Below, in pieces: positions 9,392 through 59,043 of a DNA stretch of 64,000 nucleotides. The position numbers and the translations under genes were made by a program. The notes under the pieces were generated by a model. The model saw only the letters and a list, made by a program, of their open reading frames with translations, searched no databases and had not been told where the DNA came from. Position 1 is the stretch's first letter, and each line of letters opens with the position of its first letter. The stretch lies in sequence record KJ019143.1; one strand, written 5' to 3'.

Positions 9392-9430
9392 AAACACATA
9401 AATAAGATATGTAAAGTTCTTATTACAACA

Positions 9431-9540
9431 CTTCCATCTAACCGAGACCTACGGGGAAGTAAAATACGTCTCTAATACCTACACCGGAGGGTGGTGTAGG
9501 AATAATACTATCGTCAGCTCCCCCTGGCACTACTTACCCT
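9431..9540 (+). ncRNA. Structured psbA 5' leader, PhotoRC-II-like RNA motif
   Basis: CTTCC(9431-35)/GGAAG(9455-59) stem crossed by GAGAC(9444-48)/GTCTC(9468-72), plus hairpin CCTACACC/GGTGTAGG (9478-9500). Position matches the PhotoRC-II motif. Confidence 0.7.
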
Positions 9541-57853: not shown

Positions 57854-58459
57854 ATGACAGAAGCGACAGAAACCAAGAAACCGCGTAGCGCACGAAAGGC
57901 ACGCAAACCAGCGGCACCCAAAGTCCCTACCTCCCTACCAAACAATCCTTTGATGTTTGAGATTCTTGACATGGCATCCCGTACTAGGGGTACTGAAAAG
58001 AAGGTAGATGTTCTCAAGAGATATGGGTGTGGTGCTCTAAAGGCACTATTCATCTGGAACTTTGATGAAACTGTAGAGTCTGCTCTACCACCAGGTGAGG
58101 TTCCCTACTCTGGATATGAAGAACAGCATGTATACAGTGGAACACTAACTGATAAGATTGAAGAGTCTTCACGTCAGATGTATGAGAATGGAAGTTTCTC
58201 ATTGGGTTCTACTGATGCCAACGCTAAGACTACACTAAGGGCACAATGGAAGAACCTCTATCACTTTGTTGAGGGTGGTAATGGTGGTCTATCTAAAACA
58301 CGTCGTGAGATGATGTTTATCAACCTCCTAGAATCTGTTCATCCCCTGGAAGCAGAGATCCTCATCCTAGTCAAGGATAAGGAACTTGACACCAAGTATA
58401 AGGTTCCCTTTGAGGTTGTAGAAGAAGCATTCCCCGAGATCCAATGGGGAGGACGTTGA
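57854..58459 (+). CDS. Conserved T4-like cyanophage hypothetical protein
   Basis: 'LFIWNFDE...LPPGEVPY', 'LYHFVEGGN' and 'LESVHPLEAEIL'. Confidence 0.8.
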   Translation: MTEATETKKPRSARKARKPAAPKVPTSLPNNPLMFEILDMASRTRGTEKKVDVLKRYGCGALKALFIWNFDETVESALPPGEVPYSGYEEQHVYSGTLTDKIEESSRQMYENGSFSLGSTDANAKTTLRAQWKNLYHFVEGGNGGLSKTRREMMFINLLESVHPLEAEILILVKDKELDTKYKVPFEVVEEAFPEIQWGGR

Positions 58460-58485
58460 CATAAATACAAAGGATATGTTATAAT
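58456..58485 (+). promoter_or_regulatory. Consensus sigma70 promoter overlapped by an NtcA-like box
   Basis: TTGACA (58456-61)-18 nt-TATAAT (58480-85) with TGn; GTT-N8-TAC at 58455-68. Confidence 0.85.
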
Positions 58486-58492
58486 ATCCACA

Positions 58493-58579
58493 CGTTCAAC
58501 CCACTTCGGTGGGTCGCAAGTAAGTCGCGGAACGGATTCGTTCATCCAGGAAACTGGACGCAAACGACTGAAGGAACGG
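58493..58579 (+). ncRNA. Tandem glutamine-riboswitch-like aptamers (glnA/Downstream-peptide family)
   Basis: Two copies of CGTTCA-[hairpin]-CGCAA...GGAACGG (58493-535 and 58539-579). Hairpins are ACCCAC-TTCG-GTGGGT and TCCAG-GAAA-CTGGA; P1 is CGTTC/GAACG. Confidence 0.8.
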
Positions 58580-58612
58580 GTTTTAACTAACCTCAACTTC
58601 AGGAGTACTACT

Positions 58613-58780
58613 ATGAACACTCTCGCACTCATCAAAAAGCAGATCAACAAAGCTGCCGCACTCCACAACGCTCAGATCTCTCACACCGCCTATCGTGGTG
58701 TTGAGTATGATGTTAGTTGTGATCAGTCTTCCGAGACACATGGCACTTTCTGCTACCGCGGACGCACTTATAACAAGTGA
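58613..58780 (+). CDS. DUF4278 / GifB(IF17)-like peptide, 55 aa, not in ORF track
   Basis: MNTLALIKKQINKAAALHNAQISHTAYRGVEYDVSCDQSSETHGTFCYRGRTYNK has two YRGxxY motifs; AGGAG RBS. Confidence 0.85.
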   Translation: MNTLALIKKQINKAAALHNAQISHTAYRGVEYDVSCDQSSETHGTFCYRGRTYNK

Positions 58781-58801
58781 GTCCTAACTGAATAGTGTAG
58801 G

Positions 58802-58832
58802 AAAGGGAAGGACTTGTTTCTTCCCTTTTTTT
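58802..58832 (+). terminator. Intrinsic terminator
   Basis: AAAGGGAAG/CTTCCCTTT stem plus T run. Confidence 0.85.
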
Positions 58833-58863
58833 GTGCTATAATATAAACAAGTATTCTATCATC

Positions 58864-59043
58864 ATGGACACAGACAAAGTAAAGTTTCTCATTCAATCCA
58901 TAGAGGTTCTCATTGATGAACTAAAATCAGAAGTATATGCTGAGGGTGAAACTTTTAAAGTAAGTGAAACCCAGTACTCAGAGGAATCAGAAATTCCAAC
59001 GACTATAACAAACTTTTATCCTGAAGTGACGGACGATCTATGA
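58864..59043 (+). CDS. Conserved cyanophage hypothetical protein
   Basis: MDTDKVKFLIQSIEVLIDELKSEVY; ATGA overlap with thyX. Confidence 0.7.
   Translation: MDTDKVKFLIQSIEVLIDELKSEVYAEGETFKVSETQYSEESEIPTTITNFYPEVTDDL

Follow-up and report, generated by a model that had tools for sequence, protein, structure and literature searches.

A glutamine-aptamer transcription unit in a cyanophage

The window analysed here (a stretch of 64,000 nucleotides (nt) from sequence record KJ019143.1) belongs to Synechococcus phage ACG-2014f, a T4-like cyanomyovirus of the Kyanoviridae; its positions 58300-59000 are 99.4-100% identical to 26 ACG-2014f genomes. An earlier reading, made from the sequence alone, had described positions 58456-58832 as a self-contained module built from a promoter, aptamer repeats, a ribosome-binding site, a small open reading frame (ORF) and a terminator, and all five elements are present. 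The arrangement supports a phage transcription unit complete in itself, in which glutamine-type aptamers lie ahead of a small DUF4278-like ORF, and the order of promoter, aptamer, ORF and terminator is kept across relatives. Judged from its sequence, the module is probably a phage-borne, glutamine-responsive translational ON switch for the small protein. Its features, all on the plus strand, are the following:

58456-58485 (+), sigma-70-type promoter: TTGACA (58456-58461), an 18-nt spacer and TATAAT (58480-58485), 12/12 matches to the consensus, with TG before the -10 box
58493-58579 (+), outer glutamine-I-type aptamer as placed by the RF01739 alignment, its helix P1 formed by S1 CGUUC (58493-97) and S4 GAACG (58574-78)
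58499-58514 (+), P2 hairpin of the outer aptamer with a UUCG loop, followed by the CGCA strand (58515-18)
58523-27 with 58565-69 (+), P3 of the outer aptamer, AGUCG paired with CGACU, plus the GAAG junction
58517 with 58579 (+), predicted long-range pair C58517:G58579 of the outer aptamer
58529-58562 (+), putative inner unit at the tip of P3: S2 GGAACGG (58529-35), linker AUU and S3 CGUUCA (58539-44)
58545-58 (+), hairpin of the inner unit, UCCAG-GAAA-CUGGA, then CGCA (58559-62)
58568-58602 (+), predicted expression platform, from the minimum free energy (MFE) fold and covariation: anti-Shine-Dalgarno (anti-SD) strand CUGAAG (58568-73) with CUUCAG (58597-602), which overlaps the Shine-Dalgarno (SD) sequence
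58578-82 with 58589-93 (+), predicted hairpin H, GGGUU with AACCU, using the G40 and G41 positions of S4
58601-58605 (+), SD sequence AGGAG, 7 nt 5′ of the AUG
58613-58780 (+), gene of the 55-residue protein (RefSeq gp282, family phrog_545), with a predicted N-terminal helix, two YRGxxY β-hairpins and a likeness to DUF4278
58803-58832 (+), intrinsic terminator: a 10-bp G+C-rich hairpin (58803-58827), then seven T ending at 58832

Aptamer sequence and family membership

By sequence, the leader RNA belongs to the glutamine-I class and would be expected to bind L-glutamine. Comparison with the two Rfam families that the sequence-only reading had singled out gives a match to RF01739 at 58491-58582 with 41.1 bits (E=1.6e-5), above the gathering score of 35, whereas the glutamine-II family RF01704 reaches 32.1 bits against a gathering score of 33. 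The RF01704 alignment moreover has non-canonical pairs in its P2, and the 3′ strand of the RNA has no enclosing adjacent helix with which to form the pseudoknot of that family. Both repeats contain the full core (CGUUCA, a hairpin, CGCA and then GGAACGG), and together they supply four P1-type strands, namely S1 CGUUC (58493-97), S2 GAACG (58530-34), S3 CGUUC (58539-43) and S4 GAACG (58574-78).

In crystal structures, the glutamine pocket is built from C1, G2, G18, C19, C39, G40 and G41, through a C1:G40 pair, a G2:C39 pair in a triple with G18, and a C19:G41 long-range pair (PMC6698751). When these positions are mapped onto the leader, all pocket nucleotides are found in both units, and they are invariant in an alignment of 63 unique leaders with variable loops masked, as is the core of the inner unit (A6′, CGCA, G35′ and G41′). 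The helices of the outer aptamer do vary in the same alignment. P2 has three pairs changed on both sides; the top pair of S1:S4 is C:G in 61 leaders and U:A in 2 (one pair changed on both sides); P3 is 100% paired, its three variants being G-C to G-U exchanges.

Probable nested pairing of the two units

Comparison of relatives supports a nested arrangement of the aptamers, in which the outer strands would pair with each other (S1:S4), the inner strands likewise (S2:S3), and both units would share the P3 helix. In 80 viral contigs S2 is changed to CAACG (G to C), and S3 carries the compensating change to CGUUG (C to G) in 77 of them; these contigs span seven different linkers, and S1 and S4 stay complementary to one another, as CGUUC and GAACG or, in six of the loci, as CGUUU and AAACG. 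Across the unique leaders, the S2:S3 top pair is G:C in 27 and C:G in 36, and is never mismatched. The complete nested model (S1:S4, S2:S3, both hairpins and P3) leaves 99.4% of alignment cells paired, with eight pairs changed on both sides. The RF01739 match takes in both repeats by placing an insertion of 41 nt within P3; what it describes is the outer, S1-to-S4 aptamer, and it is thus not an artefact. The two repeats that the sequence-only reading had noticed at the predicted transcription start are therefore both real, but the compensatory changes argue against independent units set side by side. On this comparison, the inner core appears to be a circular permutation of the outer one: its helices follow each other in an unchanged cyclic order, but the opening lies at P3 and the closed end at P1. 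This inner core might itself bind glutamine.

Reading frames within the inner aptamer of relatives

Most related phages have, in place of the GAAA loop of the inner hairpin, a complete ORF of 53-66 codons. One such ORF, of family phrog_504 (53-56 codons, function unassigned), occupies positions 2793-2960 of contig L030 and 451-618 of L209 (S-RIM2, KX349227). It is present in 311 phage records, compared with 373 for the gene of the 55-residue protein, and is absent from the window (58545-58558). In L030 and the cultured S-RIM2, CGUUCAUCCC is followed directly by the AUG, which abuts the 5′ arm of the inner hairpin. At its 3′ end the ORF reads ...UGG GAC GCA AAC GAC UGA AGGAACGG, where the last five codons and the stop double as the hairpin's 3′ arm, the CGCA strand, the 3′ strand of P3 and a portion of the anti-SD strand. 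The SD sequence of the phrog_504 ORF itself (GGAG) overlaps the GG of S2.

A second, unrelated ORF of 65-66 residues, with a hydrophobic, signal-peptide-like N terminus, lies in the same loop in L012, L015, L025 and L027, about 250-60 nt 5′ of the downstream protein gene; its end, ...RDA[HN]D-stop, is imposed by the sequence of the aptamer. Further variants occur at this site: the first aptamer is entirely absent from L012 and L015; in L018 (2859-2970) S2 GGAAC is fused to the last 22 codons of an embedded ORF and S3 is lost; and in L006 (1245-1389) a long non-coding hairpin replaces the embedded ORF. The L018 and L006 variants both score above the Rfam threshold. For the window, a leader peptide in the inner aptamer was considered and rejected: the frame ending ...LDAND-stop has neither a start codon nor an SD sequence and is not coding.

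With its two parts held some 165 nt apart by the embedded ORF, the riboswitch escapes standard Rfam scans. Among 20 related loci tested, Rfam finds it in 3 and misses the other 16 that carry the protein gene (the window was found separately), and its detection is limited to loci with a short or partly deleted inner loop. By comparison with these relatives, the ACG-2014f leader derives from a cassette that is widespread in cyanomyoviruses, and is a compact form of it from which the ORF has been lost. Whether two cores on a shared P3, the inner one permuted, together with an embedded ORF (311 of 373 records) amount to an undescribed architecture with a combined metabolite-and-translation logic is close to an even question, and we lean slightly against it. 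If they do, translation of the embedded ORF would unfold the sensor and could be coupled to the downstream protein gene, and one of the commonest phage riboswitches would have been largely overlooked.

Expression platform and proposed switching

The AGGAG ribosome-binding site claimed by the sequence-only reading has an SD-like counterpart in 56 of 57 unique relatives, and it is overlapped by one strand of a covarying helix. The anti-SD side of this helix, CU[G/A]AAG, overlaps both the 3′ strand of P3 and the GAAG junction; its partner strand, [C/U]UU[C/U]AG, shares bases with the SD sequence. All six positions are paired in 80 of 82 unique platforms, where the central pair is G:C in 33, A:U in 26, G:U in 23 and A:C in none, and the helix ends 9-11 nt before the AUG. 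Of 51 unique linkers, 48 are predicted to form hairpin H, which starts at G40/G41 and has stems that differ among them (GGA/UCC, GGAU/AUCC and GGGG/CCCU, as well as GGGUU/AACCU in the window). The MFE fold of the window leader (-45.2 kcal/mol, z=-3.74) shows an SD-masked state with both the anti-SD helix and hairpin H. The same fold pairs S1 GUUCA (58494-58498) with UGAAC at the start codon (58614-58618), a pairing without covariation support; within the close family, every ORF begins with AUG AAC ACN (Met-Asn-Thr). In this model fold, the S1 pairing might act as a second layer of start-site masking.

A simple terminator scan of the window sequence gave no terminator-like hairpin with a U-run between aptamer and ORF, which argues for translational control. 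The anti-SD helix and hairpin H both draw on nucleotides required by the aptamer in its ligand-bound form, and binding of glutamine should therefore free the SD sequence. An SD-masking helix has been proposed for gifB (PMC6212724), and both glutamine riboswitch types behave as ON switches in reporter assays (PMC6212724, PMC6698751).

The proposed mechanism would run as follows. Transcription from the strong host-type promoter would start about one base before the RNA sensor, where S1 would pair with S4 into the P1 helix of an outer, glutamine-I-type three-way junction, and S2 with S3 into the inner, circularly permuted copy at the far end of the shared P3. At low glutamine, CUGAAG would pair with CUUCAG over the SD sequence and the ligand-contacting GG would be locked in hairpin H, leaving the ribosome-binding site masked. 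At high glutamine, as in a nitrogen-replete host, the ligand would stabilize the long-range C:G pair as well as P1; neither the anti-SD helix nor hairpin H could then form, and the 55-residue protein would be translated. The terminator would close the unit.

In a number of relatives (L029, L073, L076, L082, L093, L100 and others) the platform holds about 30 extra nt between S4 and the SD sequence. This insert consists of ACGGAUCC, a covarying hairpin capped by a GNRA or UUCG loop, and then GAGAAGGUU.

The 55-residue protein and its family

The sequence-only reading had found a 55-residue ORF with two YRGxxY motifs that the ORF list before it had missed; the ORF is real, and the public annotation already holds it, as hypothetical protein gp282 (YP_009134493.1) in RefSeq. 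Its codon pattern points to a genuine protein gene under purifying selection. Of its 55 codons, 53 vary at the third position across 56 unique relatives, compared with 25 at position 1 and 16 at position 2, and 66% of codon differences are synonymous. In the wider family, no columns other than the motifs Y27-R-G-V-E-Y and Y48-R-G-R-T-Y are invariant or nearly so. In PHROG the protein belongs to phrog_545, with function unassigned. An AlphaFold2 model built on a 37-sequence alignment has a helix at residues 3-23 and two short β-hairpins at the YRG motifs (predicted local distance difference test score (pLDDT) 79.5; predicted template modelling score (pTM) 0.38). A candidate zinc site made of C36, C47, H43 and H18/H24 was discarded, these residues being invariant only in the close clade and replaced in wider relatives.

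The gene is found in 373 of 50,697 phage records, all annotated as hypothetical and nearly all from Synechococcus myoviruses (S-RIM2, S-RIM8, S-RIM12, Syn19, Syn30, S-SM1 and the S-CAM phages). Searches with the protein match more than 592 IMG/VR contigs and 451 protein clusters at 90% identity, and a profile search of 1.84 billion representatives returned only 112 relatives. DUF4278 (PF14105) is matched by all 24 family members examined and is the only family hit consistently (best E 3.5e-5, all below the cut-off); one of the 24 also matches DUF5969 weakly. Distant relatives resemble the 'downstream peptides' of picocyanobacteria, and 2 of 10 (P0228 and P0194) pass the DUF4278 cut-off. Those DUF4278-like ORFs that could be placed lie on phage-like contigs behind glutamine-II-type aptamers. 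Examples are L205 (3925-4000) and L207 (2262-2333), GC-rich phage-type contigs that are not T4-like, whose aptamers carry the compensatory pseudoknot variants CGUUG/CAACG and CGUCG/CGACG, respectively. With repeated YRGxxY motifs in a short protein encoded directly 3′ of a glutamine aptamer, the link between aptamer and peptide family is robust at the sequence level.

The scan of genome collections with the peptide profile recovered three contigs, L082, L083 and L084, which had been binned as 'Euryarchaeota archaeon TMED129' and 'Verrucomicrobiales bacterium' and are almost certainly cyanophage contigs mis-binned into metagenome-assembled genomes. A cyanobacterial origin of the protein was entertained and rejected, as these contigs are phage-like, the distant-relative searches gave four matches each, on phage-like contigs, and no direct host homologue was recovered.

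Alternative interpretations

Several observations weigh against the nested architecture. The four P1 strands are mutually compatible in the window, so that the topology rests entirely on relatives; the S2 variants were picked by a search pattern of our own; the discrimination depends on one base pair per helix and possibly on only two independent compensatory events; and repeat 1 alone (58491-58537) scores only about 21 bits. In addition L012 and L015, with one 5′ half and one 3′ half, must use an S3:S4-equivalent pairing, which means that both registers are physically possible. These facts bear on a classical tandem riboswitch of two independent aptamers, S1:S2 and S3:S4, that would sharpen the response. 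Such an arrangement would suit head-to-tail repeats that each hold a complete core, a second repeat (58537-58582) that by itself reaches 35.0 bits on RF01739 and 32.1 bits on RF01704, the tandem glnA RNAs of the literature (PMC2864571, PMC10265488), and the evidence from the single-unit lineages L012 and L015 that an S3:S4-like aptamer can stand alone. We nonetheless regard it as quite improbable, given that in 36 of the 63 unique leaders both of its P1 helices have a mismatched top pair, while the nested model keeps these positions paired, that it is less stable in the window by 8.5 kcal/mol (-17.9 vs -26.4 kcal/mol for the nested fold), that it does not explain the conserved complementarity of AGUCG and CGACU, and that in the L018 deletion variant, which has no S3, only S1:S4 can form. 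A more serious contender, to which we still give clearly less than an even chance, has the outer aptamer alone sensing glutamine, the inner repeat being an extension of P3 left over from duplication, devoid of a ligand site and tolerated in other phages as an insertion site for small ORFs. The inner unit, whose junction is shortened, may indeed not bind glutamine at all: the strand before S2 counts 1-2 nt in place of the canonical GAAG, which may leave the unit without an E-loop, the loop joining G41′ to C1′ is just 2-4 nt, and in most relatives the coding of the embedded ORF (...W-D-A-N-D-stop) confounds conservation of the inner 3′ half. Yet the inner core is invariant in the 63 leaders, including the ORF-less window, L002, L003 and L006, and a glutamine-II aptamer works when split into two strands (PMC6698751), which indicates that connectivity is flexible.

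For the output of the module, the direction of switching is not readable from sequence with certainty, and when the energy of secondary structure alone is counted, the most stable fold is the SD-masked one, about 9 kcal/mol below the best ON state (-45.2 vs -35.8 kcal/mol); for an ON switch the balance must therefore come from tertiary and ligand energy, or else from the kinetics of folding during transcription. A rival in which the element switches OFF or acts on transcription, with less peptide made when glutamine is present, is nevertheless very improbable, as the anti-SD strand and hairpin H occupy P3, the GAAG junction, G40 and G41, all needed by the ligand-bound aptamer, the terminator scan described above found no hairpin with a U-run ahead of the ORF, and the characterized glutamine riboswitches of both types are ON switches (PMC6212724). 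As to the effector, some features of the protein itself weigh against the favoured reading. Its DUF4278 match of 21.7 bits (E=2.7e-4) lies below the Pfam cut-off of 25.3, so that the comparison suggested by the sequence-only reading yields likeness without formal membership; against the PDB it has no sequence match and no fold match with E below 4; and the peptide-profile scan of the genomes of 185,579 species found no close homologue in cyanobacteria, only the three contigs above. The sequence-only reading had further proposed that the peptide tunes glutamine synthetase (GS) or nitrogen flux. In its strongest form, that of an IF17-like inactivating factor shutting down host GS at high glutamine, the idea draws on the association of riboswitch and DUF4278 that the module shares with gifB/IF17 (PMC6212724), on a small, basic peptide with two YRG motifs, and on the room that the authors of host studies leave for co-evolved GS binding by short picocyanobacterial DUF4278 proteins (PMC6212724, PMC6316151). 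It is unlikely all the same. In IF17 the IF7-like C-terminal part inactivates GS, and the DUF4278 part is dispensable for inhibition and mainly stabilizes the protein (PMC6316151); the phage protein has no IF7-like region and ends two residues after its second YRGxxY, where its DUF4278-like part ends, so that a caveat already attached to the proposal was correct. Inactivating-factor control of GS is also considered absent from marine picocyanobacteria (PMC6316151), the hosts of this phage, and the sub-threshold DUF4278 score comes with no structural or PDB support. The link of the peptide to GS is hence not robust, unlike the link to the aptamer. Of the earlier interpretation, the sensor part was right and the effector part premature. 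Our best guess is that the peptide shares its target with the host DUF4278 peptides under riboswitch control, some component of nitrogen assimilation or signalling.

Promoter, terminator and neighbouring features

The consensus promoter named by the sequence-only reading is one of only three near-consensus sigma-70 sites on both strands of the 64-kb window. Of 88 unique relatives, 77 have a promoter of the form TTGAC[AT]-N16-18-TAnnnT, with its spacing to the first aptamer strand unchanged. Transcription is predicted to start at about 58491-58493, at the first aptamer strand, and expression would presumably be early. An NtcA operator at the promoter was rejected as a conserved feature: in the window a GT-N10-AC overlaps the -10 box, and relatives have GGTCTATAATAGACC, with the wrong spacing and no GTA...TAC. 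A covarying inverted repeat does span the -10 box (58472-58489, GGATAT...ATATCC), with GGTCTATAATAGACC, GGTATATAATACC, GGTGTTATAATAACACC, TGGTATAATTACCA and ATGTCTATAATAGACAT at the same position in relatives, and is not an NtcA site; since its 3′ arm precedes the predicted start, any action would be on the DNA itself or within read-through RNA.

The terminator of the sequence-only reading also holds. It was overlooked by the simple terminator scan and confirmed by folding of positions 58780-58835 (-18 kcal/mol, z=-2.96), and a hairpin plus T-run lies 3′ of the ORF in 51 of 57 unique relatives. Directly after the T-run stands an extended -10 promoter-like TGcTATAAT (58834-58842), ahead of an ORF at 58864-59043 (phrog_2848); several relatives have TATAAT at this spot as well. 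In RefSeq NC_026927 the 55-residue ORF is flanked by a DUF6433 protein on one side and by a 59-residue ORF and then thyX on the other. Elsewhere in the window, a PhotoRC-II RNA motif (RF01717) is found at 9418-9513 with 69.4 bits; it is the known cyanophage element associated with psbA.

Significance

Glutamine is the cell's nitrogen-status signal, and nitrogen supply limits cyanophage production. Riboswitches are, to our knowledge, regarded as rare in phages. A 2017 survey listed only two glutamine aptamers in cyanophage genomes (PMC5473149); the module described here is present in most T4-like Synechococcus phages, a distribution far wider than reported. Abundant ocean viruses would thus carry their own direct sensor of host glutamine, gating a conserved small protein. 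The target of that protein, once known, would show how phages adjust infection to the nitrogen state of the host, and could also reveal the role of the host's riboswitch-controlled DUF4278 peptides. The wide distribution and the architecture should interest riboswitch and cyanophage specialists alike, for whom the compact ACG-2014f leader, which takes 121 nt from the predicted start to the AUG and lacks the embedded ORF, is the handiest natural version for biochemistry on the proposed nested double aptamer.

Comparison with known systems

Tandem forms of the glnA RNA were reportedly described by Ames and Breaker in 2011. In the literature searched, which lay outside that work, there is no description of the phage peptide family as a regulated gene, of the nested or permuted pairing, of this expression platform or of the ORF inside the aptamer loop. 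Modules of this kind are known from cyanobacteria, and the nested, permuted architecture is a variant of them: pairing of an aptamer with a small DUF4278 ORF behind it has been reported there (Weinberg 2010, PMC2864571; Klahn 2018, PMC6212724), as have tandem glnA RNAs (PMC2864571) and their association with DUF4278 genes (PMC6212724). 'Triple' glnA arrangements are mentioned in a review (PMC10265488), and occasional glutamine-riboswitch matches are on record in cyanophage genomes (PMC5473149, PMC9964418, PMC9602691).

The closest RNA relative is the glutamine-I riboswitch (RF01739), with which the leader shares the P1/P2/P3 three-way junction, the CGNAAGUA and GAAG junctions, the GGAACG strand, the occurrence in tandem copies and a marine, cyanobacterial setting. 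Unlike it, the phage RNA has a C:G long-range pair, as in type II, rather than G:C, and its P3 carries a permuted second core instead of a small hairpin. With the glutamine-II riboswitch (RF01704) of yfr6/PMM1846, the module has in common the pocket sequence, the position of the sensor directly 5′ of a YRG peptide of 30-100 residues, the ON direction proposed here and a host group of marine Synechococcus and Prochlorococcus. The window RNA differs in having no P2 helix around the 3′ strand to make it the loop of a pseudoknot, and in being phage-encoded, double and nested, and its peptide belongs to a separate phage clade, phrog_545. In gifB/IF17 of Synechocystis sp. PCC 6803, a glutamine-I riboswitch acts on translation, through a proposed SD-masking helix released by glutamine, ahead of a protein with an N-terminal DUF4278 (PMC6212724); IF17 continues into an IF7-like C-terminal domain that binds and inactivates GS, whereas the phage peptide has none.

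Among phages, Methylophilales phage Melnitz and Pelagibacter phage Mosig are also marine myoviruses with a glnA-type aptamer of their own (PMC9004378). There the aptamer is linked to a transfer-messenger RNA (tmRNA) gene and not to a DUF4278 peptide, and the platform was not analysed in that study (PMC9004378). By analogy only, and with no homology, the tandem glycine riboswitch offers a natural two-aptamer amino-acid sensor with inter-aptamer contacts, and group I introns, again as an analogy only, tolerate a protein ORF in a loop of a functional RNA, as do the relatives of the window phage.

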